DNA of 64,000 bases from Paragordius varius. Its lineage: Eukaryota; Animalia; Nematomorpha. Position numbers and translations under genes: made by a program. Shown one piece after another: positions 15,222 through 50,836 of this stretch. Location: assembly GCA_964247055.1 (NCBI GenBank), contig OZ176053.1:2108001-2172000 (forward strand), written 5' to 3'. Positions within the stretch are counted from its first letter, which is position 1; each line of letters starts with the position of its first letter. The notes beneath the pieces were generated by a model, which saw nothing but the letters and a program-made list of their open reading frames with translations, did no database searches and was not told the origin of the DNA.

Positions 15222-18200
15222 CCATACTTTCCAACAATCAGCCATACAAATCAACTAACCTCAAATTTTACTAATCGGCCATAAATTTCGAACAATCAAC
15301 CACACTTTCCAACAATCAACCTCACATTTCCAACAATCGACATCCCATTTCCAACAATCAACCTCATATTTCTAACAATCAACCATACTTTCCAACAATC
15401 AACCATAATTTCCAACAATCAACCATAATTTCCAACAATCAACCTCACATTTCCATCCATGAACCATACTTTCCAACAATCAGCCATACTTTTTAACAAT
15501 CAACCTCACATTTCCAACCATCAACCTCACATTTTCAACAATCAACCTCATATTTCTAACAATCAACCATACTTTCCAACAATCAGCCATAATTCCCAAC
15601 AATCACCCATACTTTCTCAACAATCAACCATACTTTCTCAACAATCAACCTCACATTTCCAACACCTCAAATTTCCAACCATTAACCTCACATTTACAAC
15701 AATTAGCCATACTTTCCAACAATCAGCCATAAATTTACAACAATCAGCCATACTTTCCAACAATCAACCTCACATATCCAACCATCAACCTCACATTTCC
15801 AACAATCAACCTCATATTTCTAACAATCAACCATACTTTCCAACAATCAGGCATACTTTTTAAGAATCAGCCATACTTTTCAACAATCAGCCATTCTTTC
15901 CAACTTTCAACCTCACATTTCCAACCATTAACCTCACATTGTCAACAACCAACCATACTTTCCAACAATCAACCTCATATTTCCAACAATCAACCTCACT
16001 TTTCCAACCATTAACCTCACATTTCCAACAATTAGCCATACATTTCGGACTATTAAGCTATCATTTCCAACAATCAACCATACTTTCCCAACAATCAGCC
16101 ATACTTTCCAACAATCATCCTCACATTTCTAACAATCAGCTATACATTTCCAACAATCAACCTCATATTTCCAACAATCAACCTCAAATTTCCAACAATC
16201 AGCCATTCTTTCCAACAATTAGCCATACTTTCCAACAATCACCCATACTTTCCCAACAATCAACAATACTTTCCCAACAATCATCCATACATTTCTAACA
16301 ATCAACCATACTTTCCAACAATCAGCCATACATTTCCAACAATCAACCATACTTTCCAACAATCAGCCACACATTTTCAACAAACCTCACATTTTAAACA
16401 ATCAGCCATACATTTACAACAATCACCCATACTTTCTCAACAATTAACCATACTTTCCCAACAATCAGCCATACCTTTTAACAATCAGCCATACTTTTCA
16501 ACAATCAGCCATTCTTTCCAACAATCACCCATACTTTCCCAACAATCAACAATACTTTCCCAACAATCATCCATACATTTCCAACAATCAACCATACTTT
16601 CCAACAATCAGCCATACATTTCCAACAATCAGCCATAATTTCCAACAATCAGCCATACATTTCCAACAATTAGCCATACTTTTTAAAAATCAGCCATTCT
16701 TTCCAACAATCCAGCCATACGTTTCCAACAATCAGCCATAATTTCCAACAATCAACCTCACATTTCCAACAATCAACGATACTTTCCAACTCAGCCATAC
16801 ATTTGCAACAAACCTCACATTTTTAACAATCACCCATACATTTACAACAATCAACCATACTTTCCAAAAATCAGTAATACATTTCCAACAATCAGCCATA
16901 CATTTCCAACAATCAACCATACTCTCCAACAATCAACCTCACATTTCCAACCATGAACCTCACATTTCCAACAATCAACCTCACATTTCCAACAATCAAC
17001 CTCAAATTTCCAACAATCAGCCATTCTTTCCAACAATTAGCCATACTTTCCAACAATCAGCCATACATTTTCAACAATCAACCTCACATTTCCAACAATC
17101 AGCCATAAGTTTACAAGAATCAACCTCACTTTTCCAACAATCAGCCATACTTTCCAACAATCAGCCATACATTTCCAACAATCAGCCATACTTTTAACAA
17201 TCAGCCATACTTTTCAACAATCAGCCATTCTTTCCAACAATCAGCCATAAATTTACAAGAATCAGCCATACTTTCCAACAATCAGTCATACTTTCCAACA
17301 ATCAGCCATACTTTTAACAATCAGCAATACATTTTCAACAATCAACCTCACATTTCCAACCATCAGCCATAAATTTACAAGAATTAACCTCACTTTTCCA
17401 ACAATCAGCCATACTTTCCAACAATCAGCCATACATTTCCAACAATCAGCCATACTTTTAACAATCAGCCATACTTTTCAACAATCAGCCATTCTTTCCA
17501 ACAATCAGCCATTCTTTCCAACAATCAGCCATACGTTTCCAACAATCAGCCATAATTTTCAACAATCAACCTCACATTTCCAACAATCAGCCATACATTT
17601 CCAACAATCAGCCATACTTTTAACAATCAGCCATACTTTTCAACAATCAGCCATTCTTTCCAACAATCAGCCATACGTTTCCAACAATCAGCCATAATTT
17701 CCAACAATCAACCTCACATTTCCAACCATCAACCTCACATTTCCAACAATCAGCCATACTTTTCAACAATCAGCCATTCTTTCCTACAATAACCCATACA
17801 TTTCCAATAATCAGCCATACATTTCCAACAATCAGCCATACATTTTCAACAATCAACCTCACATTTCCAACAATCAGCCATAAATTTACAAGAATCAACC
17901 TCACTTTTCCAACAATCAGCCATACATTTCCAACAATCAGCCATACTTTTAACAATCAGCCATTCTTTCCAACAATCAGCCATACTTTACAACAATCAAC
18001 CTCACATCTCCAACAATCAACCATACTTTCCAACTCAGCCATACATTTGCAACAAACCTCACATTTTTAACAATCACCCATACATTTACAACAATCAACC
18101 ATACTTTCCAAAAATCAGTAATACATTTCCAACAATCAGCCATACATTTCCAACAATCAACCATACTCTCCAACAATCAACCTCACATTTCCAACCATGA

Positions 18201-21200
18201 ACCTCACATTTCCAACAATCAACCATACTTTCCAACAATCAACCTCAAATTTCCAACAATCAACCTCAAATTTCCAACAATCAGCCATTCTTTCCAACAA
18301 TTAGCCATACTTTCCAACAATCAGCCATACATTTTCAACAATCAACCTCACATTTCCAACAATCAGCCATAAATTTACAAGAATCAACCTGACTTTTCCA
18401 ACAATCAGCCATACATTTCCAACAATCAGCCATACTTTTAACAATCAGCCATACTTTTAACAATCAGCCATACTTTTCAACAATCAGCCATTCTTTCCAA
18501 CAATCAGCCATAAATTTACAACAATCAGCCATATTTTCCAACAATCAACCTCACATCTCCAACCATCAACCTCACATTTCCAACAATCAACCATACTTTC
18601 CAACAATCAACCTCACATTTCCAAAAATCAGCCATACTTTCCAACAATCAGCCATACATTTCCAACAATCAGCCATACTTTTAACAATCAGCCATACTTT
18701 TCAACAATCAGCCATTCTTTCCAACAATCAGCCATAAATTTACAAGAATCAGCCATACTTTCCAACAATCAGTCATACTTTCCAACATTCAACCTCACAT
18801 TTCCAACAATTAGCCATACTTTCCAACAATCAGCTATACATTTCCAACAATCAGCCATACTTTTAACAATCAGCAATACATTTTCAACAATCAACCTCAC
18901 GTTTCCAACCATCAGCCATAAATTTACAAGAATTAACCTCACTTTTCCAACAATCAGCCATACTTTTAACAATCAGCCATACTTTTCAACAATCAGCCAT
19001 TCTTTCCAACAATCAGCCATAAATTTACAACAATCAGCCATATTTTCCAACAATCAACCTCACATCTCCAACCATCAACCTCACATTTCCAACAATCAAC
19101 CATACTTTCCAACAATCAACCTCACATTTCCAAAAATCAGCCATACTTTCCAACAATCAACCATACTTTCCAACAATCAACCTCACATTTCCAACAATCA
19201 GCCATACTTTCCAACAATCAGCCATACATTTCCAACAATTAGCCATACTTTTTAAAAATCAGCCATTCTTTCCAACAATCAGCCATACGTTTCCAACAAT
19301 CAGCCATAATTTTCAACAATCAACCTCAAATTTCCAACAATCAGCCATACATTTCCAACAATCAGCCATACTTTTAACAATCAGCCATACTTTTCAACAA
19401 TCAGCCATTCTTTCCAACAATCAGCCATACGTTTCCAACAATCAGCCATAATTTCCAACAATCAACCTCACATTTCCAACCATCAACCTCACATTTCCAA
19501 CAATCAGCCATACTTTTCAACAATCAGCCATTCTTTCCTACAATAACCCATACATTTCCAATAATCAGCCATACATTTCCAACAATCAGCCATACATTTT
19601 CAACAATCAACCTCACATTTCCAACAATCAGCCATAAATTTACAAGAATCAACATCACTTTTCCAACAATCAGCCATACATTTCCAACAATCAGCCATAC
19701 TTTTAACAATCAGCCATTCTTTCCAACAATCAGCCATACTTTACAACAATCAACCTCACATCTCCAACAATCAACCATACTTTCCAACTCAGCCATACAT
19801 TTGCAACAAACCTCACATTTTTAACAATCACCCATACATTTACAACAATCAACCATACTCTCCAACAATCAACCTCACATTTCCAACCATGAACCTCACA
19901 TTTCCAACAATCAACCATACTTTCCAACAATCAACCTCAAATTTCCAACAATCAACCTCAAATTTCCAACAATCAACCTCAAATTTCCAACAATCAGCCA
20001 TTCTTTCCAACAATTAGCCATACTTTCCAACAATCAGCCATACATTTTCAACAATCAACCTCACATTTCCAACAATCAGCCATAAATTTACAAGAATCAA
20101 CCTCACTTTTCCAACAATCAGCCATACATTTCCAAAAATCAGCCATACTTTTAACAATCAGCCATACTTTTCAACAATCAGTCATACTTTCCAACATTCA
20201 ACCTCACATTTCCAAAAATTAGCCATACTTTCCAACAATCAGCTATACATTTCCAACAATCAGCCATACTTTTAACAATCAGCAATACATTTTCAACAAT
20301 CAACCTCACATTTCCAACCATCAGCCATAAATTTACAAGAATTAACCTCACTTTTCCAACAATCAGCCATACTTTCCAACAATCAGCCATACATTTCCAA
20401 CAATCAGCCATACTTTTAACAATCAGCCATACTTTTCAACAATCAGCCATTCTTTCCAACAATCAGCCATTCTTTCCAACAATCAGCCATAAATTTACAA
20501 CAATCAGCCATACTTTCCAACAATCAACCTCACATCTCCAACCATCAACCTCACATTTACAACAATCAACCATACTTTCCAACAATCAACCTCACATTTC
20601 TAACAATCAGCCATACATTTCCAACAATCAGCCATACTTTAAACAATCAGCCATACTTTTCAACAATCAGCCATTCTTTCCAACAATCAGCCATACGTTT
20701 CCAACAATCAGCCATACTTTCCAACAATCAATTTCACATTTCCAACAATCAACCATACTTTCCAACAATCAACCTCACATTTCCAACAATCAGCCATACT
20801 TTCCAACAATCAGCCATACATTTCCAACAATTAGCCATACTTTTTAAAAATCAGCCATTCTTTCCAACAATCAGCCATTCTTTCCAACAATCAGCCATAA
20901 ATTTACAACAATCAGCCATACTTTCCCACAATCAACCTCACATCTCCAACCATCAACCTCACATTTCCAACAATCAACCATACTTTCCAACAATCAACCT
21001 CACATTTCCAACAATCAGCCATACTTTCCAACAATCAGCCATACATTTCCAACAATCAGTCATACTTTCCAACATTCAACCTAACATTTCCAACCATCAA
21101 CCTCACATTTCCAACAATCAGCCATTCTTTCCAACGCCATTCTTTCCAACAATCAGCCATAAATTTACAACAATCAGCCATACTTTCCCACAATCAACCT

Positions 21201-24200
21201 CACATCTCCAACCATCAACCTCACATTTCCAACAATCAACCATACTTTCCAACAATCAACCTCACATTTCCAACAATCAGCCATACTTTCCAACAATCAG
21301 CCATACATTTCCAACAATCAGCCATACGTTTCCAACAATCAACCTCACATTTCCAACCATCAACCTCAAATTTCCAACAATCAGCCATTCTTTCCAACAA
21401 TCAGCCATAAATTTACAACAATCAGCCATACTTTCCAACAATCAACCTCACATCTCCAACCATCAACCTCACATTTCCAACAATCAACCATACTTTCCAA
21501 CAATCAGCCATACCTTTCAACAATCAGCCATTCTTTCCAACAATCAGCCATACTTTCCAACAATCAACCTCACATTTCTAACAATCAACCATACTTTCCA
21601 ATCAGCCATACATTTACAACAATCAACCATACTTTCCAACAATCAACCTCACATTTCTAACAATCAGCCATACATTTCCAACAATCAGCCATACTTTAAA
21701 CAATCAGCCATACTTTTCAACAATCAGCCATTCTTTCCAACAATCAGCCATACGTTTCCAACAATCAGCCATAATTTCCAACAATCAACCTCACATTTCC
21801 AACCATCAACCTCACATTTCCAACAATCAGCCATACATTTCAACAATCAGCCATTCTTTCCTACAATACACCATACATTTCCAATAATCAGCCATACATT
21901 TCCAACAATCAGCCATACATTTTCAACAATCAACCTCACATTTCCAACAATCAGCCATAAATTTACAAGAATCAACCTCACTTTTCCAACAATCAGCCAT
22001 ACATTTCCAACAATCAACCTCACATTTCCAACAATCAGCCATAAATTTACAAGAATTAACCTCACTTTTCCAACAATCAGCCATACTTTCCAACAATCAG
22101 CCATACTTTTCAACAATCAGCCATTTTTTTCCTACAATAACCCATACTCAGCCATACATTTCCAACAATCAGCCATACATTTACGACAATCAGCCATACT
22201 TTCCAACAATCAACCTCACATCTCCAACCATCAACCTCACATTTCCAACAATCAACCTCACATTTCCAACAATCAGCCATACTTTCCAATCAGCCATACA
22301 TTTCCAACAATCAGCCATACTTTTCAACAATCAGCCATTCTTTCCTACAATCAGCCATACTTTTCAACAATCAACCTCCCATTTCCAACCATCCACCTCA
22401 CATTTCCAACAATCAACCATACTTTCCAACAATCAGATGTACATATCCAACAATCAGCCATACTTTTTAACAATCAGCCATACTTTCCAACAATCAACCT
22501 CACATTCCCAACAATCAGCCATACTTTTTAACAATCAACCTCACATTTCCAACAATCAACCTCACATTTCCAACAATCAACCATACTTTCCAACAATCAG
22601 ATGTACATTTCCAACAATCAGACATACTTTTTAACAATCAACCTCACATCTCCAACAATCAACCATACTTTCCAACTCAGCCATACATTTGCAACAAACC
22701 TCACATTTTTAACAATCACCCATACATTTACAACAATCAACCATACTCTCCAACAATCAACCTCACATTTCCAACCATGAACCTCACATTTCCAACAATC
22801 AACCATACTTTCCAACAATCAACCTCAAATTTCCAACAATCAACCTCAAATTTCCAACAATCAACCTCAAATTTCCAACAATCAGCCATTCTTTCCAACA
22901 ATTAGCCATACTTTCCAACAATCAGCCATACATTTTCAACAATCAACCTCACATTTCCAACAATCAGCCATAAATTTACAAGAATCAACCTCACTTTTCC
23001 AACAATCAGCCATACATTTCCAAAAATCAGCCATACTTTTAACAATCAGCCATACTTTTCAACAATCAGTCATACTTTCCAACATTCAACCTCACATTTC
23101 CAAAAATTAGCCATACTTTCCAACAATCAGCTATACATTTCCAACAATCAGCCATACTTTTAACAATCAGCAATACATTTTCAACAATCAACCTCACATT
23201 TCCAACCATCAGCCATAAATTTACAAGAATTAACCTCACTTTTCCAACAATCAGCCATACTTTCCAACAATCAGCCATACATTTCCAACAATCAGCCATA
23301 CTTTTAACAATCAGCCATACTTTTCAACAATCAGCCATTCTTTCCAACAATCAGCCATTCTTTCCAACAATCAGCCATAAATTTACAACAATCAGCCATA
23401 CTTTCCAACAATCAACCTCACATCTCCAACCATCAACCTCACATTTACAACAATCAACCATACTTTCCAACAATCAACCTCACATTTCTAACAATCAGCC
23501 ATACATTTCCAACAATCAGCCATACTTTAAACAATCAGCCATACTTTTCAACAATCAGCCATTCTTTCCAACAATCAGCCATACGTTTCCAACAATCAGC
23601 CATACTTTCCAACAATCAATTTCACATTTCCAACAATCAACCATACTTTCCAACAATCAACCTCACATTTCCAACAATCAGCCATACTTTCCAACAATCA
23701 GCCATACATTTCCAACAATTAGCCATACTTTTTAAAAATCAGCCATTCTTTCCAACAATCAGCCATTCTTTCCAACAATCAGCCATAAATTTACAACAAT
23801 CAGCCATACTTTCCCACAATCAACCTCACATCTCCAACCATCAACCTCACATTTCCAACAATCAACCATACTTTCCAACAATCAACCTCACATTTCCAAC
23901 AATCAGCCATACTTTCCAACAATCAGCCATACATTTCCAACAATCAGTCATACTTTCCAACATTCAACCTAACATTTTCAACCATCAACCTCACATTTCC
24001 AACAATCAGCCATTCTTTCCAACGCCATTCTTTCCAACAATCAGCCATAAATTTACAACAATCAGCCATACTTTCCCACAATCAACCTCACATCTCCAAC
24101 CATCAACCTCACATTTCCAACAATCAACCATACTTTCCAACAATCAACCTCACATTTCCAACAATCAGCCATACTTTCCAACAATCAGCCATACATTTCC

Positions 24201-25604
24201 AACAATCAGCCATACGTTTCCAACAATCAACCTCACATTTCCAACCATCAACCTCAAATTTCCAACAATCAGCCATTCTTTCCAACAATCAGCCATAAAT
24301 TTACAACAATCAGCCATACTTTCCAACAATCAACCTCACATCTCCAACCATCAACCTCACATTTCCAACAATCAACCATACTTTCCAACAATCAGCCATA
24401 CCTTTCAACAATCAGCCATTCTTTCCAACAATCAGCCATACTTTCCAACAATCAACCTCACATTTCTAACAATCAACCATACTTTCCAATCAGCCATACA
24501 TTTACAACAATCAACCATACTTTCCAACAATCATCCTCACATTTCTAACAATCAGCCATACATTTCCAACAATCAGCCATACTTTAAACAATCAGCCATA
24601 CTTTTCAACAATCAGCCATTCTTTCCAACAATCAGCCATACGTTTCCAACAATCAGCCATAATTTCCAACAATCAACCTCACATTTCCAACCATCAACCT
24701 CACATTTCCAACAATCAGCCATACATTTCAACAATCAGCCATTCTTTCCTACAATACACCATACATTTCCAATAATCAGCCATACATTTCCAACAATCAG
24801 CCATACATTTTCAACAATCAACCTCACATTTCCAACAATCAGCCATAAATTTACAAGAATCAACCTCACTTTTCCAACAATCAGCCATACATTTCCAACA
24901 ATCAACCTCACATTTCCAACAATCAGCCATAAATTTACAAGAATTAACCTCACTTTTCCAACAATCAGCCATACTTTCCAACAATCAGCCATACTTTTCA
25001 ACAATCAGCCATTTTTTTCCTACAATAACCCATACTCAGCCATACATTTCCAACAATCAGCCATACATTTACGACAATCAGCCATACTTTCCAACAATCA
25101 ACCTCACATCTCCAACCATCAACCTCACATTTCCAACAATCAACCTCACATTTCCAACAATCAGCCATACTTTCCAATCAGCCATACATTTCCAACAATC
25201 AGCCATACTTTTCAACAATCAGCCATTCTTTCCTACAATCAGCCATACTTTTCAACAATCAACCTCCCATTTCCAACCATCCACCTCACATTTCCAACAA
25301 TCAACCATACTTTCCAACAATCAGATGTACATATCCAACAATCAGCCATACTTTTTAACAATCAGCCATACTTTCCAACAATCAACCTCACATTCCCAAC
25401 AATCAGCCATACTTTTTAACAATCAACCTCACATTTCCAACAATCAACCTCACATTTCCAACAATCAACCATACTTTCCAACAATCAGATGTACATATCC
25501 AACAATCAGCCATACTTTTTAACAATCAGCCATACTTTCCAACAATCAACCTCACATTTCCAACAATCAACCATACTTTCCAACAATCAGTATCACATTT
25601 CCAA
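15222..25604. repeat. 10.4-kb minisatellite array of 20/21-bp monomers with higher-order duplication
   Basis: Monomers TTTCCAACAATCAGCCATAC, ATTTCCAACAATCAACCTCAC and variants. About 19745-22632 is repeated almost identically at about 22633-25500 (offset 2888, also seen as paired ORFs in the track). Older offsets of 1754 and 1244 bp are also visible. Confidence 0.97.
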
Positions 25605-27629: not shown

Positions 27630-30380
27630 TCATAATTCAACCATTCTCACTAAAATTAATATTATTAAAACTAGGAGATGTTATACTTGATTCCTCCATA
27701 TAACCTTAAAATAAGTAGAAAAAAGTCATAAACTAAAAATATTTTACCAGTCAATACATTGATTCGTTCTTCGCATTTATAGTTATATGATATTAGCAAA
27801 GCAAAGTTTTAAACGCAATCTAAAATTCCTTACCCATTAAATGATCCCGAATGTCTATTGAATTTAAAAATAGTTATAAAAAAATTTAGAATTAATTTAA
27901 TTTTGTAATATATTTGCATTTTAATTCTTTTAAATAACCGTTTAAAATTTTGAAGTCATACTAACCAAGATAAATATCAAAAAACTTTACTTTACGAAAA
28001 AAGGGGCGTTCAGTTACAAATAACTGTACAAATAAATGTTTGACAGACGCTATATACAAATTTTTAATAACGATTTATAATTAAAAAAAACATTTGGAAA
28101 GGGCTAATTTTTTTCGTTTAATATCAAACCATTTTGGTATTTTAAATTTTTAAAATAAAATAATTGATTTAGTTTTTTATCAAGAAACTTATCTAAAAAA
28201 GTGTAATTAAACGTATTTGATTTAACAAAAAAGGGTCATATATTTAATTTGGTGAATGCATATTCCCTTATACCAAACAAATATTTATCAACAAAGTTTC
28301 GACGGTTAAGAATTTATTATTGAGACTCCCTTTCCCTTATAACGATAGCTAGCCTTAGAGTATGCACTTAAATGGTTGCTTATTTCACACAATAGTTGGG
28401 CAATTTACAATACACAATAATGTATGGAAAAAACAACAAAATGATGAATAACAATTATTTCCTTTCTTTTTTCCATACACTCTTGTATTGCAAAACACCC
28501 TACAATAGTGTGTGAAATAAGCAACCATTAAAATGCATACTGTATATTTAACTATGCTTAAAAGGATGATATTATCATACCGATAATAACGCACTATTCT
28601 ATTTATGAGGTTCTAATTAAATTAGCTACACATTTATATATGATTCTAGGTTGTAGGGGCCGATCATATGTAAAAAAAATTATTTTTTTCTAATTTTCAT
28701 TTAGATATGATATGATATTTTATGTAATATGAGTATTTAATGATAAAAAATTAATAATAATAATTGATAATCAATTAGAAATGTTCATTCTTTGGCAAAA
28801 GGTATTCACCAAAAAAATAATTTTTTTGTCCAAGGGCCGTTCAACATATATTTTTGTTAAAAATATAGCTTAGACGCATTAGCAGATATTTATACTTAAA
28901 ATAATTCCATCAAAAAATTAAGTAAATATTTCAGCGTTCCAAAGAAAGCATTTTTAGGGCCACGGTTTAAATACTACTGCTAGGTATGCTAAAATTGCAC
29001 GACGCTAAAATTTTGTAATTAGCAGACAAGGAATTTAAGTAAATTACCTATTAATTCGGTCTCTGGAGCTAAAAATAATTTATTAGATTAAATAATATAA
29101 CATTAATATTCAAAAGTAATAAAACCTACCGGTAGAATATGATGACATTTCTGTATAGATAAATAATTTTAAATTTAAAATCTTTTTTTTTGGATATTTC
29201 AAATTTATTTTCTGACTAAGTTCTGAAAGACACTTGTAAATATTGCTAATTACTATATCATAATCAAATTTAAGCTGTAAAATGTTTTTCTTTTCACTTT
29301 TACGTTCGATCTGAATAAATTAAATTCATGGAATTTACAAATCGTTTAAAGGGGCAAATTCACCTGCCAAATATAAGATTAAGATATAGTAAAAATTGTT
29401 ATTATACTGACAAAACGTAAAAATATAAAGAAATATTTTCTAAAATGAATGATTTTTTATAAATCTTGATTTAATCAACTGATTGTTTGAAACAAACTAT
29501 GAAATAGAGATGTATATTGGTACAATCAATTATTTATTTTACAATTGTAATAAAGGGAAAAATTAAGGGGTAAAAAGGGTGTTTGTCTTTAGAAAAAAAT
29601 ATTTATTTTTATTTTTTCTTTTTGTCCGTATACTTTCAATTTTTACTGTAATTAATAACTATATTTTAAATTTTCTTTATATTAAAGGTTTGTTTAAGGC
29701 TGTTTTTATATAAAACATTAAAAAGCATTAATTTATTATTATTAAAGGACCATAATATAAGATCTGCACCATTTTAAAAAACTTTTTTAAAAAAGCAAAA
29801 AATTAAATAACTTTAATGAAACCGATTGAAAGCGCAATGCTTACTCCTAAAACGGTTTCCAATAAGGCTAATATTTAAGACAAAAGCAGTTTTGATTCAG
29901 ATCTCTGGTATTATTTATTTAAACTAAAGATTTCACAAATTAAAACATTTTAACGCATGCTATTTAGTATGTCATAAAATTTTTTAAATACAAAATAAAT
30001 TACCATCTAAAGATTGCTCCAATTCTATATTTAATAAAAGATAATTTATAATTTTTTTATTTGGATTTGTAAAACAGATTGTTTAATCAAATTAACCACC
30101 TAATAGTAATGTCCAAAGTTAATTTATATTGCGCTAATTTTTACCGCTAAAATTTGCCCCAAAAATTTTATTAAATTAAAAGCCACATTTTTGGAATATG
30201 AAATTTATACCTTCGGTAAATTGATTAATTTCTATATTATAGTTAAATTTCAAGTATAAAATGTTAAAATTCCAATTCGTAAATAAACCTTCAGACATTC
30301 TTGATAATTCTAAATTTTATAAACTATATCATCAATAGAGCTACCTTGGAAAAAATCTAATTTTTTGGTTTAAATTAAGG

Positions 30381-30417
<37 letters not shown>

Positions 30418-33400
30418 AATTTTTAATTACTTCGTTCTATATATTCTGCACACATTTCTATGTAATTACAAATCTACCTTCATATATTGTTTGCAATTCT
30501 TAAAATGAAGAATCAGATATTTTTTGGCAATTATATGTAAAAACAAAGAACTCTAAAAACAGAGGTGTCCAACACGCGCCTCTTCGAAATATTCTGTCCG
30601 GCCTACGAAAAAATTGAAGATTTAGAATTTGAAATTTATACACACAAAATCTTAAAAAATGATATGTCTTACAACACTTTTTATAGTTTAGCTTCCAACT
30701 GGCAGCCAACTAGAAAAAAGTCTTATATTCTATTTGTAAAATCTTTTGTTTAAAATTTAATAAAATATTTATGAATGCCCATATATATATATATATTTAG
30801 TAAAAACTGAAATTATACGAAAACGTTAAAATATAACTAAAAAAACCATACTTTTTTAATCCTTAGTTTTTCGCTCATAAATTATATATTTACAATTTTA
30901 AAATACATAATTTATTGTGTCACCAATATAGATATCAATTCTATAGTATGCAATTTGAAACAATGGGTTCTATTTATAAATGAAGCTTGCAAAAGTATGG
31001 ATGTCTTTTGAAAAAAATTGTGATTATATTTTAACGTTTTGTCCTTTTCAGTTTTTACTGTATATCAAATGCGGCCTGTAAAGCCATTTGTGTTGGACAC
31101 CACTGTCATTAAAAGATATATATTACCATTAAAAAGCCCTTCGCCTATATTTACCCCCCAAAAAATTTTATATTTTCTGCAATCAATTGATCAATACCAT
31201 ATTTTCAAAAAAATACCTGGACCGATAATCACTATTAATCAAATAATGGGAGGTTTTTTTATAAAAAATTTTTCTTTGAATGAGCATTTAGAATGTTTTA
31301 TAAAATACTTTGACTTATGGCGATAAATCGATCTTGGATTGCATTCACATCTAAACATAGGTTTAAAAATAGTACTATAATTTGAAGCAATCAATTTTTT
31401 AAAAAAATTTTACAGTAAAAATTGAAGCATAAAAACTAGAAGGCAAATATTTTTTTAAGTCAAATATCATAAACTATTTAATCATCCTCCTATTAAATTA
31501 TATATTTGTGTGTATAACTAATATATACTTTGCAAATTACAATGAGTTCTATTTTAAAAAACAGCCTGTTTACAAAATAATGGTTGTCTTTTAAAAAAAT
31601 AATATTTGTCTTTTCATTTTTACGTTTTGTCCGTATAATTTGACATTTTACTGTATATTTTTAAATTTATAGTATACAAGTAATTTAATTAACAATTGAA
31701 TTTTTAATAAAAAACTAGACATATCATAACAATTTTCTTATACAAATATATACCATTTACACTTTAAATTCACTCTTAAACAATTCAAATTCACCCTTGA
31801 AAAATTCATATTCCCCCTAAAAATAAATTATGTTTTTTTAAGATTAAAATTACCTTATTTTTTAAAAATAAAATTTTGTTTAAAATTAAAATTATACTTA
31901 AATATTAATTAACTAAGCCTTAAAGATATAATATATTAATAATGAATTATATTAGCTCGAAAACACATAATTTTTTTTAATTGTTCAAGAGTGAATTAGG
32001 ATTGTTCCAGGGTGAATTTGAATTGTTCAAGGGTAAATATAACCTTTTATAAAAATTTAGAGTCCTAATGTAAAATGCGGTATTGACAATTTTAAGTTTA
32101 CTAGAAAATATGGCACTATAAACAGTAAAAATCAAAATTGTACGGACAAAATCTGAAAATAACAGAGATAATAAACAATCATTCTTTTTAAATCTTGAAT
32201 TTTTTATTGTTTTAAATTGCAAAATATAATATGGATATGTGAAATGGTAAGACAATCAATGATGTATTTTACGATTGTAATAAATGATTTTTATAGGTAA
32301 ATCAATGTATAAAAAATATAATTGACTTAAAATTTTTTTTTATATTTTCACGTTTTGCCCGTACTTTTTACTGTAAGTATGAATACATTGCGCACCCCAA
32401 ATGGTTTATAATAAAAATTATGTTATAAAAAACTTACACCATCCACCAATGTAATTGCCTATTGTCATATATCCACATTTTATTTGTCATAATTTGCATA
32501 ATATAAATAAATATCCAAATTTAAAATTAAACTGCATTATAAAAAACTAGAAATAGAAAAGTCAATGCTATATATTGAGAAGTTTAATCTCAATATAAAA
32601 AATCACCTGTTTCAGAGGCGTAGCTAATGGAGGGAGGGGGGCTGACTGGAAGCATTAGTTAAAGGGACGCCGGATTTCAAAAAAAATTAAACTCTATTTA
32701 AAGAAAAATAGGTAGTTAAAAGTTATTATTTTAAATAATACATCAAAAATCACACCCATTTATAAGTACGTTGTTTGAATTTTATCATATTTTTAAACAC
32801 CGGGTGCCAGAAATGCAAGCTACGCCTCTGACCAGTCATTGAGACAAATGTGATTACTTAATCGTTCAACGATTCTTCTTTGATTGATAATGGCTAAAAA
32901 AAGAATGAAACATTATTATTATGTTTTTATCAATATTTTTAGCGCTGGCTTTATAATATTTTTTACTGTAAAAAAGGAAATTTATTAATTTATATACTAC
33001 CCTGAGATATAATTGGTTGAGTTGGTGAAGTTTCTGAAGCAATAGATATGGAGTTTTGTCTAGAGACTTTAAAAAGTAGTTAAAATTTAGTTTTGATAAT
33101 ATGAGATTAAGTTAAAATCAATTAATAATTATTTAATCAGACCTGACGACTCCGTTGGATAATGCCTAGTGAAACTTCTGCCTACACTGCTAGAATCTAA
33201 AAATTAAATGTTCTTAATTCTTTTAGACCTACAAATGTGAAAACATTTTATATAAGATACTTATTAAACAAGGTTTAGACATAATATTACAATTAATCTT
33301 ATGGGAATTGTATATTTAAAGTCAAGCTCAATTCAAAATGACAGAATTGTGTTGTAACTATCGGGTTTGCCTGAGCAAACGCAAAATCTTAGGTGCAATA

Positions 33401-36400
33401 TAATTTTTTTCAAATTTAAGGGATTTAGAAATTTTTAATTGTAATGTTTATATAATTTGGAAAAAATCAGCCCTAGAGAAATGCAATAAAATAATTTTTG
33501 CGAGTTAAGACAAATATTTACCTGAATTCGAAGTGGACGTTGAAGAAAAATCCGAAATAGTGTTAATTGAATCAGAAGCTATATATATTAATATTGAATC
33601 AGAAGCTATATATATTAATATTGTATGGTATTATTTTTTCATAACAATTTATCAATATATTAAACACCATAGATTGTTTAAAAAGGATCACCATGAAATG
33701 TTCAAGAATGCCTTGAGGTTTAAAGTATTAATTAAACAATATGCTACATAGATTTTAAGTATTTAAAGTATATGCACATTTACATTAATATCAATTGACA
33801 TTATATTTTCGGTCTATTGAAAATACAGTAGCATATGAATGCCCTATCTTACATCTACAATATTATTTAATTATGGAAATTCGTTTTATATCATATGTTA
33901 CTGTATTTTAACAATTCAAGATTTATGTGCATATTGTATTTCGATTAAAAATTGTTATTGAAAAGTATTTTGAAACCGGAAAAGTTATTAAAACTATAGG
34001 CGCTTAAAAAATTTAAACATAATTAATTGTCACATGTCATTATGATACAGGTCCTTATGTTTGTCGACACATGTTTAAGAATATTTTGTGCATTTTTTGA
34101 GACAAATTAATCAAAAATAAGATATAATTTAATTGGTGTAAATATGACTAATATGTATATACACTGTGTGAAAAAAGGGGTTAATTTTTTTTAATAAAAA
34201 AGTATTTTTTAATGAGATAGCTTATAACCAGCAAATCCATTTGACGCAAAATTTTTATTGTTGGCGACTTAATTTTTGAAATATTAAGAGAAAATTAAAA
34301 TTGGGCAAAAGTGAAGATTAAGGATAATTCAAAAAATAATGATAAAAATGAGATATTATGGTTTATTATCCTTTAAAAGATACTTTCAACATATAAATAG
34401 CCTAAACCCATATAGTTAGGGTTTGCATAAAATCTCATTAAAAGCTGCGTTATTCTTTTAACATAATAAAAAGAAAATTTTTTATGAAACTTAATTAAAA
34501 TAATTTATTAATTATTTACTAGTTAAACTCACTATTTAAATCTTAACACTCATATTTTATTCAGAAAAAAAACTTATACATCAAAAGAAAATTAAAAATT
34601 ATTGTTTTTTGTTTTTACATTTTTTTGTCATCTGATTTATGAGTGTACAAAAAATTTATACTGTTTCATTTTGGAATCTTACATGGAGAATCATAAAGTA
34701 TATAATTTAGAAAAATAAGATTTAAAAGTAGTGGCATATCAACCAACATTCCTTACAAATACGTGTAACATGTAACACAAATTAATATTTTTACTGGAAT
34801 ATGTACGGATTTTTGATTAATTTACCACTACTTGTAAATCCTATTTTATATTAATTTATATACTTTATAATAGCCGCTCATGTAAGATTCCAAAATAAAA
34901 CAGCAGTAAATTTTTTGTACACTCTAAACCAGATGACAAAAAATGAAAAAATTAAAAACAATATTTTAGTTTTTATTTGAAATAGCCGCTCATGTACGAT
35001 TCCAAAATAAAACAGCAGTAAATTTTTTGTACACTCTAAACCAGATGACAAAAAATGAAAAAATAAAAAACAATATTTTAGTTTTTATTAGAAAAATAAA
35101 TTTTTTTTACTAAAAATATAAATTTAAGATTTTAATAGTGAGAATAATTAAAAATATTTATTTTAATATAGTTTGATAAAAAATTTTTTGTCTTTTAAGA
35201 TGTTAAAGGAAAAACGCCATCTTTTGAAATGACATTTTATATAAACCCAACTATATGATTTTAGGCTATTAATATGTTGAAAGTATCTTCTAAAATGATA
35301 ATAAACCATAATATTTCAAATTTTATTATTTTTGAATACCCTTAATTAGCTTTAGTTTTTACTTTTTGCCCGATATTGATTTTTTCTCAATATTTTAAAA
35401 CTAGGTCGTTAAATAAAAATTTTACGGCAATCGAATTGGCTGGTCATAAGCTATCTCATGAAAAAAATTTATTTTGTTTAAAAAAATTGATATAAAAACA
35501 AAAAATATTTGTATTTTTACGTTTTACCTGAATAATTACAAATTTTATCATATTATTAAATAAAAATATAATTAATTACCAGAACTGGTAAATACCGACA
35601 TTGGTATAGAATTAGCCACAACTAAATAATATATGTTAAGATTTTATTAAACCTGTCGCACTAAGACTGCTGGCCGATGTTAAGACGGGTGATATTGTAG
35701 TTATCAAAATATTTCCCGCCACGATTCCAGATACTTTTTTTGAGAAATAAAAAGATATTTATAAGAAAAAAGGGAAGAATAAACCTGCCACAGTTCCTGT
35801 AAAATTTAAATTTTTTATAGATAATTTGTTATGTTGATATGGTATAATAATATTATTTACCTATAGTTAAACCTATATATATAGTTAATTTGTATTTTTA
35901 TAACATGAAATTTTTTACCCAACTCTATATCTAAAAAAATTAATAATTAGTTTAAAATATTTTCCCGTAATATAATAAAGATTTGGTCTACTGTCAAGAA
36001 TGGAGGTAGAATCGTGTGGATTATTGGAACTAATGCTAAATTATGCGAAAAAGCCATTTACAATAAGGAATAATAACGAAATTGGCTTCTAATAAAAAAT
36101 AAAAATATTTTTTCGATTGGTGAATTATTTAACAGCTCCTTTATAAAGGACCTAAAAACACCTCTTTATTGATAATTTGTGAATTAAGGATAAGATTGTA
36201 AAACCTATTTAAAATCATTCGAAAAATCCTAATTCTCAAAAATATCATAAATACATTACCAAATAATTAACATTATAACTACAAATATATCGCTAATTTT
36301 TGATAAAATATTGTCAGATACCATTTACAGTAAAAAGACAATTATTATTGGTTAACATAAGGAAATGTGCTGAATTTTGTTCTCTTTTTACTGTAACTTC

Positions 36401-38444
36401 CATCTGGCATTATTCAAAGTGTTTATCTGGCTACGCAATTTTACTCAAACTTTATGTTAAATAAATACTCAAAATTGTTAAATAAATACTGAACATTCAA
36501 ATAATGTTACTTGTTTAGCCTGATAATAGTAAACATTCTTTGATCAATCTGATGTTGGGGCCCTTCAAATAATCGATTGGATGATTGAGAAACTGTTTGA
36601 TTATATTTATCCACCAGCTTTAATATAATGTTGGTTATGTTCGTTTCTAAATTACATATATTCATATTTAAAAGATGCAAAAATATTGCGGTTATTGATT
36701 AAATTAAACATTACATTTTTGGCTTAATTCATATAATTGATAAATAAATGATTTTTAGATTTTCGGTGTGACCAGAGATGGTTATGGCTTCAACCGATTC
36801 CAAATAAATACCTGTAGTTTTTTACGGTTATTAGTTAATCTTGACAGATGTGTTTGATATATAAAAACAATTCAAACTATAGAAATCGCATAATGTTATT
36901 TTTACGCCATTAAATCCAAAATTAATTGAAAATATAAAATCGCTCACATATTTTTATGAAAAACTGCAATAATATATTTTTGTTAATATCACATGAAATG
37001 TTCAATTTTTTATCTCCTTATTTTAACGGAAAATATTTATAACTAACCGTTAGTATGGTATAATCGATTTGATAAAACTCTTTTAAGTTCTATAAATAGA
37101 TGTATTAAATTTAAGTTTACTTGAAAGAGTAGGAGGAGCTTTAAGCGATGTTTCGTCTTCTACATTTTTGAGTTAAGATGTAAATATATTTTTTAAAAAC
37201 TTAATCTGATTAAATTATTAACAATAAAAATTAAAATTATACAGACAAAACTTAACATAAGGGTAAATATTTTTTTAAAAGGTATTTTTAAGCCTTAATT
37301 TTCCACGAGTCATGATAAAAAAATTAGGCTTGAAAAAATACAGCTGTCCTTAGAAAAAATACTTATTTTAACTTTTTGTCCGTATAATTTTAGTTTTTAC
37401 TGTATATGATAGAAAATTTACTAAATTTTTCAGTCTGGACAACTTCCATAATTTTATTAGATTTTATATCACCCAAAACAATTTTATTGTTATAGACTTT
37501 TTCGTAATTCATAGGTTGCATATTGTTTGGTATATCATTGGTTTCATTATTGTAATATTCCAAAAAGTGATTTAAACCTAAAATATTTGATTAGAAAATA
37601 AAACTAGGGAAAATACCATTAAAATATTTAAAATTAAAAAATATTTTAGTAGGCAATCAATTTTATTTTGTAATAAGTGTGTTGAACTTTACTTTCGATA
37701 AATTTATATTTTTGTTTAGATTTGATCAGGTGATTTATCAAATATAATGATCTATCCTTTATTTATGAAAATTTTTTTTACGTTGGTATAAATATTTGGT
37801 AAAGAATGGAAAAAACAAGAGCTCTATGGTAGATCTCATACTTTTTTGATGAATATGATATTGTTAATACCATAGAGCTCTTGTTTTTTCGATTCTTTAA
37901 CAAATATTTATACAAACTTAACGAAAGAAAATAAATTTTGAATAAAATAAAGGATACATGACTGTATATCGTTTCCGTAATTACAGTAAAAATTAACATT
38001 ATACGGAGAAAACGTAATTTTTATTTTCAAAAAACCGCTGTACTTTTTTAAACTTGATTTTTTTCAATATAACTCATTCTTTTTAAGTGCTAATTAAGAA
38101 ATATGAAATTTTGTAAATAAAAATTATATAATTATATGGCAAAAATCAAGGATTGAAAAGTATGGTTGTCTTTAAAAAAAATTTTGTCTATATATTTTTA
38201 CGTTTTGTCCGTATAATTTCAATTTTTACTGTAATTTTTTTAATACCAAAAAATTGATAGCATATTTAAAAGCATGCTTCAAAATTCAATCAAATTTAAA
38301 AAAATTCAAAAGTTTTAAATTTAAAATTTATATTTAGTCGCATCAATTAAAATTAATTTGGAGTTTCTTAGATAAGGCACAAATTTATTATTTACCTGGC
38401 TGAATTATGATATGGATAAATAGTAAAAGTTTAGACGCATCCAT
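27630..38444 (-). CDS. Putative micro-exon gene (MEG-like), about 40 exons, about 467 aa, secreted or membrane protein of no recognised family
   Basis: Hand-built model, all GT-AG, frame open throughout. Exons 5'->3': 38444-38396, 37577-37473, 37442-37422, 37159-37121, 37089-37048, 36811-36773, 36646-36511, 36430-36392, 36292-36260, 36228-36205, 36151-36134, 36088-36062, 36035-35992, 35930-35919, 35872-35861, 35796-35785, 35733-35653, 35621-35580, 33578-33522, 33196-33143, 33066-33001, 32893-32858, 32458-32438, 31350-31309, 31231-31217, 31144-31127, 30498-30478, 30457-30431, 30356-30345, 30309-30289, 30231-30211, 30024-30004, 29867-29823, 29150-29130, 29068-29048, 29004-28975, 27854-27834, 27768-27748, 27704-27687, 27649-27630. 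Exon 1 encodes MDASKLLLFIHIIIQP(G), and an AATAAA lies about 40 nt after the stop. Individual exons, especially 36811-35992 and 29867-29823, are uncertain. Confidence 0.65.
28358..28542. mobile_element. MITE family E (CAGTATGC...GCATACTG, TA target)
   Basis: TIR AGTATGCACTTAAATGGTTGCTTATTTCACAC / GTGTGAAATAAGCAACCATTAAAATGCATACTG. Confidence 0.8.
29387..29648. mobile_element. MITE family A
   Basis: Family A TIRs at both ends. Confidence 0.75.
30385..30415. repeat. (TA)n microsatellite
   Basis: Pure TA run. Confidence 0.9.
30560..31105. mobile_element. hAT-type MITE (family G) with a nested family A MITE
   Basis: TIR CAGAGGTGTCCAACAC / GTGTTGGACACCACTG (15/16 match); a family A copy lies inside it. 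Confidence 0.65.
30798..31060. mobile_element. MITE family A
   Basis: Family A TIRs; nested in 30560-31105. Confidence 0.75.
31413..31653. mobile_element. MITE family A
   Basis: CAGTAAAAATTGAAG ... CGTTTTGTCCGTATAATTTGACATTTTACTG with TA flanks. Confidence 0.7.
31751..32035. mobile_element. MITE family B
   Basis: TACCATTTACAC...TTCAAATTCACCC units at the left, GGGTGAATTTGAATTGTTCAA units at the right. Confidence 0.75.
32123..32373. mobile_element. MITE family A
   Basis: Family A TIRs. Confidence 0.7.
32613..32830. mobile_element. hAT-type MITE (family F), complete
   Basis: Perfect 13-bp TIR CAGAGGCGTAGCT / AGCTACGCCTCTG; 8-bp flanks ACCTGTTT / ACCAGTCA match at 5 of 8 positions. Confidence 0.75.
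33568..33621. repeat. 27-bp tandem duplication covering a minus-strand splice acceptor
   Basis: TGAATCAGAAGCTATATATATTAATAT is present twice. Confidence 0.85.
34205..35467. mobile_element. Foldback-type palindromic element (family C), copy 1
   Basis: The left half is an imperfect reverse complement of the right half (TGAGATAGCTTAT.../...ATAAGCTATCTCA; ATAGCCTAAA.CCATATAGT/ACTATATGATTTTAGGCTAT). It contains a 112-bp tandem duplication at 34869-35092. Confidence 0.75.
36328..36393. mobile_element. 66-bp mini-MITE with CAGTAAAAAGA/TCTTTTTACTG termini
   Basis: 11-bp TIR flanked by TA on both sides. Confidence 0.65.
37222..37402. mobile_element. MITE family A (internally deleted)
   Basis: Family A TIRs with a short interior. 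Confidence 0.65.
37776..37975 (+). repeat. Hairpin-containing interspersed repeat (family D), copy 1
   Basis: About 43-bp stem, 37789-37831 pairing with 37868-37910, followed by a shared tail ending AAAGGATACATGA; homologues at about 50025 and 59545. Confidence 0.8.
37984..38231. mobile_element. MITE family A
   Basis: CAGTAAAAATT...TTTCAATTTTTACTG with TA flanks. Confidence 0.8.
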
Positions 38445-38849
38445 TTTACTTATATACTATGTAAATTTGAAAACATAATATATGGCTAACGCAAGAATAA
38501 AATATAGTTATAAATTAGGTGCAAATATAATAAACAGTATTTTGAGGGCATTTTGGCTATGAACTTTTAATACTCTGTTAATTGATATCGGGAAAAAACA
38601 AAAATATTTTTGTTTTGATATCAAACGTACGCACTCTATATTTAGAGTTCGATCGCAATATCAAATGTCCATGTAAAATTTTTAATCAACCTTTGAAAAA
38701 AAACACATCGAAACAAAAAAATTATTTTTTGTATCATTTCAGGGTGCAAGTCAAGTTCTTGATTTTTAGATACAAAAAAAATCATGCTAATAATATTGAC
38801 TGGGTCTTTTTACATTATATAAAGACTGTGTGCAAAATTTTTTTTACTG

Positions 38850-44147: not shown

Positions 44148-45466
44148 ATGCCAGTCGCAAGTAGTATTTTTCAGGTTAGTTTAAATTTTGTATGTTTTAG
44201 CCACCCTCTTTATACATTATAAAAGCCATAATAATTTTGGATAATGACGGGAAAAGACTTTTATCTAAGGTATTTTTATAAACCATATTAGTATTACGAC
44301 GAAAATCTTGCAGGAACTAAGGAACAAGATAAATTTGAGAAAAACCTATTTACGAAAACCTATCGTGCAAATTGTATCCACTAAAATATATATGTATTTT
44401 AGCTGAAATTATTATGTTGGATAAATATATATGTCTATATAAGAGCAATGTTGACGTGTATTTTTATGTTATTGGTGACCAAAACGAAAATCCAGTTTTT
44501 ATTTTAATTTTTTATATCATCCTATCAGATTTTGTTACTTAATGTATTAAACACCGTGTATGACACTATAAATATGATTTTACGGAAAAATTTGGAGAAA
44601 AAATATTTCTTAGAAAATTTAGATATGATGTTTCTTGCCATTGATGAAATTTGTGATAGGGGGTATTTTTTGGCTATAATCAATTATTCTTAGAATATTT
44701 ATGGCTTCGTCAGCAGGAGCCGTTGCTCAGCAAGTTATGTTGAGGTCAGAAGATGTTCCCTTAACCGAACAGACTATGGCTCAGGTAAATTTTTCATATT
44801 TTAGAGGGGTTTTTAAAGTCAAATTTCTGCTTATAATTTATTTGGTAAATAAATACCAATAGTTTTATCATTTATTTATCATCTTTTAAATTATTTTTGT
44901 CAATGTAATTAGCTTAATTAAACGGCATTAAATTTATTATGTTTAATTGCTCTCTATTTTAGTGTTAAAAGTCGTTTATTAAAACATAAAAAAAATAGCC
45001 CGAATAAGCTGATACTGTTATAATTGAAATTTACAGACAAAATAATATAAAAACATAAATCAAATATTTTTTTCTAAAGAGTACCTAAAATCTGATTTTA
45101 TTAAATATTACTCCTAATTTAGATAGCAGTTAATGGATTATAAATGTGATAAATTTGAATTTAAATAAATAATTTGATTTAAAATTAAAAAAAGTATGGG
45201 TTTATTTAAAAAAACATTTGTCTTTATGTTTTGACGTTTAATCTCTTTGTACGATTTTGATTTTTACTTTAAAATACCTAGGATTTGTTAATTAACGCTT
45301 TAAGTGAAAAAACTGGTTGACTGTAAATTTAATTATTCTTTTGACTGTAAGGTTAAATGCAATATATCTAATTAACAGTTTCAATTAAAATGATAGTTTT
45401 AAATTTTTTATTTTTTAGGTGTTTCAAGCTGCTAAAGATCAACTTAAATACCATCTTATGAAGTGA
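44148..45466 (+). CDS. COPZ1: Coatomer subunit zeta, 7 exons, 180 aa
   Basis: Exons 44148-44174, 44201-44269, 44292-44373, 44403-44494, 44529-44662, 44694-44784, 45419-45466 (543 nt). Protein includes [65 protein letters not shown] and DVPLTEQTMAQVFQAAKDQLK, matching zeta-COP. Confidence 0.95.
45011..45269. mobile_element. MITE family A (diverged) in the last COPZ intron
   Basis: Degenerate family A TIRs. Confidence 0.55.
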
Positions 45467-49500: not shown

Positions 49501-50836
49501 GCAAGTATGCTAATTTGTGTTAACAATTAATTTTTTACATTTATGATAAATTTATTGTGTGACTATGGAAAATTTTAAAGTATGTATAATTACCTTAAAC
49601 TTTTACTCTATTTGTTTTTTAATATATATATATATATATATCCATGGAAACAATAATTAATTACATGTTTTAAAAGAAAATATTACTTTTGAATATAATT
49701 AATGGAAGGTTAGAGTTTATTATATATATATCTAATAAATTTTCAAAACATATTTAATACATATGCTGCTTTATGCCAAATTTGCTCTAAATACTAACCT
49801 AGGTTTCCATTTTCACATATTTATTTCTTTTTATTTTAATTTGTGCTCAACAAAAGTGCCTCATTGATCCCGAATGGAATGCAGAAAAGGGATTTTTCGT
49901 TTCTCAACCGGGCAGTTCTGTAGCCACTTCCTTGAGTGTGGGGGAGGCTGTACCCAAACATGTCGGATTGCTACAAATTAAACAAAAGTATATCAGTCAC
50001 CCTTTATTTTATAAAAAAAAATTTTTCGTTAAATAAGTGGTTATAAATATTTGGTAAAATAATGGAAAAACAGAGCTCTATGGTAATTCTTATACTTTTT
50101 ATGATGAGAATATGATATTGTTAATACCATAGAGCTCTTGTTTTTTCCATTTTTTAACAAATATTATTTATGCCTATTTAACGAAAGAAAATAAATTTTT
50201 GATAAAATAAAGGGTACATGAAAAGCGATATAAATTTTTGTTAGTATATTACATAGTTAAAACATAATTTGAAATTATATATACAGTATGCATTTTAATG
50301 GTTGCTTATTTCACACTGTAGGGCAATTCGCAATTCAAGATTGTATTATCGAAAAAAAGAAGGGAAATAATTGATTATTTAACATTTTGTTTTTTCTATA
50401 CATTACTGTGTTGTGCAAATTGTCCTACTATAGTGTGAAATAAGCAATTATTAGAATGCATAATATGAAAATAATGGTAGCAAAAGGCAACCATATATAA
50501 GGGATAGATAAAAACGAAAATTGACTTGGAAAAAGTTTTCTAAAATTTGTTGTAAATTGGGGGTTAAATATGAGCGTTTATAAAAAACTACTAGTTAAAA
50601 CACTTTCAAAAAAATGACCATTCATTTAAGTAAAACTGAAATATAATATAATATGAAATGGTAATTTTTATCAGCATTAATTAACTTAAGTTACTTTGGT
50701 TTATTATAAATTATATTTCACATCTGTGATAGGGATTTCTGCCTAATACTGCTTTCATCTGTGGTCAGATTGGTGTTTTATAAACTTTAAAAGCCAATAA
50801 ATTGAACCCAAGACTCTATCTTTATTTCATAAATAC

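Follow-up and report, generated by a model that had tools for sequence, protein, structure and literature searches.

A probable gene of symmetric micro-exons concealed in a transposon-filled stretch of an AT-rich parasitic-worm genome

Can a stretch of DNA that appears empty of genes and full of transposon copies conceal a gene cut into exons so small that hardly any of them would be called singly? This question is raised by positions 27,630 to 38,444 of a 64,000-nucleotide (nt) stretch of contig OZ176053.1, filed under the nematomorph Paragordius varius and referred to here as the window. An initial annotation had proposed, on the minus strand, an ATG exon resembling a signal peptide, followed by a chain of GT-AG exons that are nearly all symmetric and keep one frame open to a stop codon with a downstream AATAAA; it had warned that these exons were chosen by eye. 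Our analysis now indicates that a gene is very probably hidden in this seemingly vacant DNA full of transposon copies, part of the AT-rich genome of a parasitic worm, and that a minus-strand gene with this exon architecture, running from the ATG at 38444 to a stop near 27630, is probably genuine and protein-coding. Statistically, it has at least 25 and perhaps about 40 exons of 12-156 nt, nearly all of them multiples of three (3n) in length and bounded by phase-1 introns on both sides. The exon chain and its splice-site signature are observed in silico, whereas we only infer the presence of a signal peptide, the destination of the protein and a possible use of exon skipping.

Because the exons of the initial annotation had been picked with the frame in mind, we wrote an unbiased chain search, a dynamic programme that considers GT/AG dinucleotides and an open frame, charges a penalty for each intron, scores codons by log-odds and takes no other input. 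The codon model contrasts 1,117 codons from the exons of Wnt, COPZ, MRE11 and a C2 domain with non-coding trinucleotides from outside the locus. Restricted to symmetric exons but otherwise unaided, the search started at the ATG at 38444, joined 39 phase-1 exons and reached a stop at about 27637, which is essentially the model drawn by eye; the pattern is thus no product of the eye. This chain scores 99.6 bits, as against 51 and 58 bits for phases 0 and 2 of the same strand, 33-51 bits for the plus strand, 34-61 bits for the reversed sequence and 46±8.5 bits for local shuffles, whose maximum is 66 (0 of 150 reach 99.6). When every repeat from a self-BLAST and two hairpin elements were masked, the minus-strand phase-1 score was still 80.1 bits, compared with 25-44 bits in the controls and 31±7.6 bits (maximum 63) in shuffles. 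Consistently, the claim that the micro-exons are nearly all symmetric is borne out by an all-symmetric phase-1 chain of 27-39 exons that lies far above all controls, and the comparison with shuffled and opposite-strand sequence that had been proposed as a check falls out in its favour.

Where does the gene begin and end? In six of seven sub-windows, minus-strand phase 1 outranks the five other combinations of strand and phase. Extending the search into the flanks (25.7-27.5 kb and 38.6-44.1 kb) gains no phase-specific score, and the limits of the gene are thereby set. Since the same phase shows the excess along the whole locus, one gene is tentatively favoured over two for 38444-27630. The proposed ends are in place: the first exon reads MDASK, then LLLFIHIII, then QPG, a hydrophobic core that, by inspection, is plausible for a signal peptide, although the residue at -3 is Gln, and the stop lies at 27632-27630 with AATAAA downstream at about 27595.

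It is conceivable that there is no gene and that the chain is a forking-paths artefact, given that DNA of 24% GC, with AG and GT about every 25 nt, always permits an open chain of tiny exons. Indeed, either strand, every phase and even shuffled sequence will yield a chain. Real donors of the window's genes are reduced to about G/GT[AT] (the slash marks the exon boundary) and real acceptors to [TC]AG, and splice sites therefore carry little information, as they do in other animals with ultra-short introns (PMC13644364). A number of results weigh against a gene. Open reading frame length gives no strand signal: segments that stay open for 28 codons or more number 89 on one strand and 87 on the other. 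The unconstrained minus-strand chain reaches 87 bits against 65±10.5 in local shuffles, only about 2 standard deviations and weak overall. Individual exons of 12-21 nt carry less than 3 bits each, too little to call them singly, and the exons fitted inside copies of miniature inverted-repeat transposable elements (MITEs) at 37894-37871, 36381-36322, 34840-34229, 32825-32607 and 32363-32352 are probably false. The codon training set is small, and the natural control DNA is a single 64-kb window. Among RNA-labelled runs with the same species label (X6-X8; small, of unknown stage and with no positive control), zero sampled words of 32800-38500 or 36500-37600 were found, and in RNA-labelled runs, likewise small and with no positive control, 30000-35990 and 32700-38600 were matched by nothing genuine, spurious matches of 37-42 nt aside. 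Finally, exon 2, the longest, has no homologue among 1.84 billion representative proteins, a collection from which the proteins of this species are absent, and belongs to no Pfam family.

Several of these points lose weight on closer view. The transcripts and junctions that a gene would predict did not appear in the RNA-labelled runs, but these are small and have no positive control, and we consider the missing RNA signal weak negative evidence. The negative protein searches are weakened because the proteins of this organism are absent from the collections. An artefact of path choice, moreover, would have to account for a phase-1 minus-strand chain that scores about twice as high as every control and 5-7 standard deviations above shuffles with repeats in or out, and for an excess in 6 of 7 sub-windows. 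Even the unconstrained search favours symmetric exons, choosing 20 of 36 (0 of 150 shuffles reach that) and, once the penalty is raised, 14 of 20 (1 of 250 shuffles).

A further argument comes from signatures that were unused in the scoring. In the phase-1 chain, G precedes the donor in 25 of 38 cases, compared with 23% in shuffle chains (maximum 53%); A follows at +3, giving GTA, in 22 of 38 (background 36%, p=0.004); and the acceptor is YAG in 25 of 38 (background 53%). This enrichment is absent from chains of the other phases and of the other strand, and the G/GTA donor agrees with the real donors of COPZ and MRE11. Exon length provides a second such signature. The ten exons of exactly 21 nt that had been claimed correspond to at least 10 AG/N21/GT units that are open in phase 1, of which the chain search takes nine, whereas shuffles average 1.3 and never exceed 6. 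Raw counts of AG/N21/GT are 28 on the minus strand against 10 on the plus strand, with 17 in the 28-32 kb bin versus about 6 per 4 kb elsewhere outside a satellite. As the unselected donor context is strongly enriched and the 21-nt class over-represented, we consider it quite improbable that no gene exists here.

The satellite just mentioned (15273-25604; 10.3 kb) repeats a 21-nt unit, AATCAGCCATACATTTCCAAC, about 505 times, has a GC skew of about -0.8 and is situated between Wnt1 and the candidate gene. A derivation of the 21-nt exons from this neighbouring 21-nt satellite was rejected, because the best rotation matches 9-11 of 21 positions, equal to the null mean of 10.5.

Alternatively, only the larger exons (156, 81, 66, 57, 54, 45, 42 and 39 nt) may be true and may belong to an ordinary gene with small exons, or to two such genes, coding for a Ser/Thr-rich extracellular protein, with the 12-21-nt exons resulting from over-fitting. 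Exons of at least 39 nt do give most of the codon score, and larger exons are mainly the ones kept at a higher intron penalty. Phase 1-1 is, moreover, the usual class in metazoan extracellular proteins according to Patthy's exon-shuffling rule, and the initial annotation had itself allowed for two genes. Among such exons are exon 2, with a codon score of +9.5 bits in frame as opposed to -11 and -0.4 bits out of frame, and the GC-rich 42-nt exon at 30561..30602. Points against this reading come from the small exons. The 21-nt class is enriched in itself, both in the raw AG/N21/GT counts and in the chain, and the phase-1 excess is also seen when the micro-exon-rich 3' third (27.5-31.5 kb) is taken on its own. 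The three consecutive 12-nt exons, all of which were found at 35930-35785 as claimed, lie in the best splice contexts found at the locus and read IEL-G-LTI-G-TVA, running on in frame into the hydrophobic 81-nt exon at 35733-35653 and lengthening its hydrophobic segment; the chain search retains two of the three. The initial annotation had also noted mutual similarity among the exons. This holds weakly for the four 21-nt exons that encode heptads, whose bodies are 53% identical while their flanks reach 36-39% and the null 32%, and does not hold beyond these. Altogether, a gene made of the larger exons only strikes us as improbable, and we continue with the micro-exon-rich gene, the exons of which are collected in Table 1.

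Table 1. Predicted exons of the candidate gene and repeat copies in the window (positions count from the first letter of the window; the slash in sequence motifs marks an exon boundary)
Feature	Position	Strand	Remarks
Exon 1, 49 nt	38396..38444	-	ATG; MDASKLLLFIHIIIQP; phase-1 end CCAG/gtaaat; resembles a signal peptide; start chosen by the symmetric-only search
Exon 2, 156 nt, phase 1-1	37422..37577	-	Asn-rich, 52 amino acids; in free and constrained chains
Exon 3, 39 nt, phase 1-1	37121..37159	-	DETSLKAPPTLS; in free and constrained chains
Exon 4, 39 nt, phase 1-1	36773..36811	-	IYLESVEAITIS; in free and constrained chains
Optional 112-nt exon, phase 1 to 2	36535..36646	-	Picked by the unconstrained chain only
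Short phase-2 detour of the first model	36535..36646, 36430-36398, 36029-35992	-	Begins with the optional 112-nt exon
Three 12-nt exons	35930-35919, 35872-35861, 35796-35785	-	AG/N12/GT with strong sites; introns of 46 and 64 nt
81-nt exon, phase 1-1	35653..35733	-	SGIVAGNILITTISPVLTSASSLSAT; hydrophobic; forms a transmembrane-like segment with the 12-nt exons; in free and constrained chains
42-nt exon, phase 1-1	35580..35621	-	Preceded by a 31-nt intron; from chain searches
57-nt exon, phase 1-1	33522..33578	-	SDSINTISDFSSTSTSNS; from chain searches
54-nt exon, phase 1-1	33143..33196	-	SSSVGRSFTRHYPTESS; from chain searches
66-nt exon, phase 1-1	33001..33066	-	SRQNSISIASETSPTQPIISQ; from chain searches
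42-, 15- and 18-nt exons	31350-31309, 31231-31217, 31144-31127	-	From chain searches; the 15- and 18-nt exons weakly supported
42-nt GC-rich exon, phase 1-1	30561..30602	-	RTEYFEEARVGHL; codon score +9.4 bits; present in every chain
Cluster of 21-nt heptad exons	30498-30478, 30309-30289, 30231-30211, 30024-30004	-	Each reads E-L/I-x-x-x-x-E/D
12-nt exon within the heptad cluster	30356-30345	-	From chain searches
45-nt exon, phase 1-1	29823..29867	-	LLETVLGVSIALSI; from chain searches
Two 21-nt exons, 61 nt between	29150-29130, 29068-29048	-	In free and constrained chains
Two 21-nt exons, 65 nt between	27854-27834, 27768-27748	-	From symmetric chain searches
Last coding exon(s) and stop	27630..27704	-	Either 27704-27637 through to TGA, or 27704-27687 plus 27649-27630
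MITE pairs	28335-28565 and 50290-50470; 37773-37926 and 50040-50200		
MITE copies	29385-29660, 31600-31660, 37363-37411, 37979-38236, about 48040		

What protein might such a chain encode? If unique DNA and, in addition, the middle 12-nt exon are all that is admitted, the resulting conservative model comprises 28 exons with 1077 coding nt and a product of 358 amino acids, whereas the product of the fuller chain has about 480, so that the product ranges from about 360 to 480 amino acids. Half of the exons in the conservative model (14 of 28) measure 36 nt or less and together hold 240 of the 1077 coding nt (22%), and the commonest exon length is 21 nt. The 358-residue product is rich in Ser, Thr and Ile (14.5% Ser), has zero Cys and zero Trp, and is of low complexity. 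It is laid out as a hydrophobic N-terminus, a single Gly/Val/Ile segment resembling a transmembrane helix, a Ser/Thr-rich middle and an acidic C-terminal part coded in heptads, and hence contains the hydrophobic, Ser/Thr-rich and acidic regions that had been described. The transmembrane-like segment, the sole one of its kind, covers residues 98-125 with a Kyte-Doolittle 19-residue peak of 1.8 and is encoded by the three 12-nt exons together with the 81-nt exon.

Two changes in the DNA fall on exons of this model. At 33566-33623 lies a perfect tandem duplication of 27 nt that has doubled the 3' splice site of the 57-nt exon together with the exon's first 13 nt. The result is a pair of in-frame acceptors separated by 27 nt. 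This duplication is a recent, frame-neutral change of the kind that a cassette gene tolerates. The second is a cluster of allelic differences at 35574-35635, seen at about half depth in the DNA run X1: A>T at 35574, T>G at 35602, an insertion of TGC after 35628 and G>T at 35635. The sole exonic one, at 35602, is synonymous (CCA>CCC) and the other three are intronic in the model, an observation that is anecdotal.

The candidate gene would have introns of two kinds, short ones of 31-77 nt and longer ones of 150-2000 nt that have been enlarged by MITE insertions. The former account for 12 of the 27 introns in the conservative model, in keeping with the many tiny introns that had been described. 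Both kinds are normal for this genome, because COPZ has very short introns and MRE11 has introns swollen by MITEs. COPZ (44148-44784), confirmed by its match to solved coatomer zeta, contains spliceosomal introns of 26, 22, 29, 34 and 31 nt, and the tiny introns previously ascribed to it are thus real. MRE11, also confirmed and starting from 47.4 kb, has introns of 120-870 nt that contain MITE copies, and MITE families are common to these proven introns and those of the candidate gene. The remaining confirmed coding features of the window, whose GC content is 22-27% outside the satellite, are a Wnt gene at 10212-13490 (10.2-13.5 kb; Pfam wnt) and a C2-domain exon at 61 kb.

Given this crowding with mobile elements, might the locus be a decaying or silent relic, an ancestral exon chain whose expression was lost after a heavy MITE invasion? 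Repeat copies present elsewhere in the window make up 31% of the locus, one high-copy hairpin element sits within it at 32610-32830, and the RNA-labelled runs contain no transcripts. The frame, however, is open through every exon, the splice dinucleotides are intact at about 27-38 junctions, and MRE11, a proven gene, accommodates these MITE families in introns of its own, while the RNA sampling was small and uncontrolled. We thus deem a relic very improbable. The hairpin element itself is GC-rich, single in the window and of very high copy number in DNA runs.

The sequencing runs that do contain the locus (X1-X4) are genomic, showing flat depth with repeats piled up. A further run, X5, is labelled as a different organism and contains unique DNA identical to the window at 3-6x (32190-32607, 33123-33286 and 35479-35649), which suggests a host-parasite sample or contamination. 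It was rejected as a relative for measuring cross-species conservation, since unique DNA identical to the window means the same organism. Also set aside was a reading of the exon-2 peptide (37423-37575, minus strand) as an FG-GAP/VCBS repeat. Its two weak matches are repeat proteins of the bacterial/archaeal FG-GAP/VCBS type, with an E-value of 6e-7 only via the summing of four target repeats; the likeness to one repeat (Y.N...QPM...V..LGDI) is weak and stands without Pfam support, and is treated as chance.

To which lineage does the genome belong? It had been proposed that the architecture occurs in a lineage other than that of the flatworms, and the adjacent Wnt1 argues for this. Its exon matches a Wnt-1-like protein of the horsehair worm Gordionus sp. 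with 41 of 47 and 21 of 27 identities in two conserved blocks, nearly identical there, and the two proteins share a long linker. This Asn/Lys-rich linker of about 250 amino acids lies between the conserved blocks, and the insertion is old and common to the lineage, because its position and length recur in the Gordionus protein. The Gordionus genome has 26.9% GC and 64% repeats, mostly DNA transposons, and about 10,000 genes have been reported for it. The window is thus most likely nematomorph and not of flatworm origin. A myxobolid myxozoan or a dicyemid, which the 22-34-nt introns had first suggested (PMC13644364, PMC4986447, PMC6736024), was rejected in favour of Nematomorpha on the strength of the Wnt1 match and of these genome statistics.

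How does the candidate compare with known systems? To our knowledge, micro-exon genes (MEGs) have so far been a flatworm speciality, tied to secreted, fast-evolving proteins at the host interface. Those of Schistosoma were reportedly described by Berriman in 2009 and by DeMarco in 2010, and DeMarco is said to have required that at least 75% of the coding sequence lie in micro-exons. Schistosoma MEGs resemble the candidate in that a hydrophobic leader exon precedes an extended series of tiny 3n exons, each of which can be dropped in frame, in that introns are long relative to exons and harbour transposon copies, and in that the products lack detectable homology to other proteins and belong to a parasitic organism. 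In flatworm MEGs, however, the exons number 10-20 and measure 6-81 bp, with 15 bp the prevailing length, and the proteins reach at most about 190 amino acids (PMC10526429), whereas the candidate has 28-40 exons of up to 156 nt and a product of about 360-480 amino acids. With only 22% of its coding sequence in exons of at most 36 nt, it also falls outside the strict definition. Schistosoma MEGs are documented to skip exons, to be expressed in glands and to have secreted products, properties that are at most putative in the candidate, whose lineage appears to be Nematomorpha rather than Platyhelminthes. A sequence relationship to a known MEG family was not found via exon 2 in the search already described, the other exons being too short to search. 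Of the label MEG-like, then, symmetry and the hydrophobic first exon stand, whereas the small share of coding sequence in micro-exons and a product that is two to three times too long do not fit. On paper the candidate would operate as a MEG does, but it is not a member of a MEG family and is, at best, a convergent variant.

Other systems share parts of the design. MEG-like genes have reportedly been described in tapeworm genome papers, for example that on Hymenolepis microstoma; they, too, combine a micro-exon architecture with very short and long intron classes in a parasite, but come from flatworms. Phase 1-1 cassette exons, which form the exon-shuffling class, are typical of metazoan extracellular and mucin-like proteins. 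In these genes, as in the candidate, a signal-peptide exon ends in phase 1, later exons are symmetric 1-1 and the products are Ser/Thr-rich and of low complexity, yet an exon usually corresponds to a folded module or a full repeat of at least 100-150 nt, whereas the shortest exons of the candidate, down to 12 nt, code for one heptad or for four residues. Ultra-short introns have been described only in myxobolid myxozoans and Dicyema among 51 animals (PMC13644364). Like these genomes, that of the window has ultra-short introns (22-34 nt in COPZ) and a 5' splice signal reduced to about G/GTa, so that very small exon and intron units are plausible and would be hard for annotation pipelines to find. 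The candidate apparently lies in a nematomorph genome, whereas that paper concerns other lineages and describes no micro-exon genes (PMC13644364). If the genome is nematomorph, the COPZ introns would make it a third animal lineage with introns below 30 nt, beside myxobolids and Dicyema (PMC13644364).

What might such an architecture be good for? As all internal exons are symmetric and of one phase, the frame would survive the skipping, duplication or loss of any of them, which would make the gene a modular, easily remodelled array of cassettes. We envision that this array would encode a low-complexity protein that is secreted or anchored at the surface or in the membrane. A role in generating variants, exon skipping and secretion are thus predictions from the architecture. 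A more far-reaching scenario, which we put forward tentatively and regard as unlikely though worth entertaining, is that a horsehair-worm-like parasite evolved, independently of flatworms, a whole class of MEG-like genes, each with a signal-peptide exon ahead of dozens of symmetric phase-1 micro-exons, in which skipping, duplication and MITE-driven remodelling of these exons would yield variant secreted or surface proteins for use against the arthropod host.

If the gene is what it appears to be, it would place the MEG design outside the flatworms and imply that this architecture arises repeatedly in parasites, by convergence. It would also provide a second system for asking how spliceosomes define exons of 12-21 nt, here in the splicing context of a genome with introns of 22-34 nt and almost no splice-site consensus. 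The phase-specific chain test can be applied genome-wide, and standard annotation may be missing a class of genes that lies hidden in seemingly empty, transposon-rich DNA.

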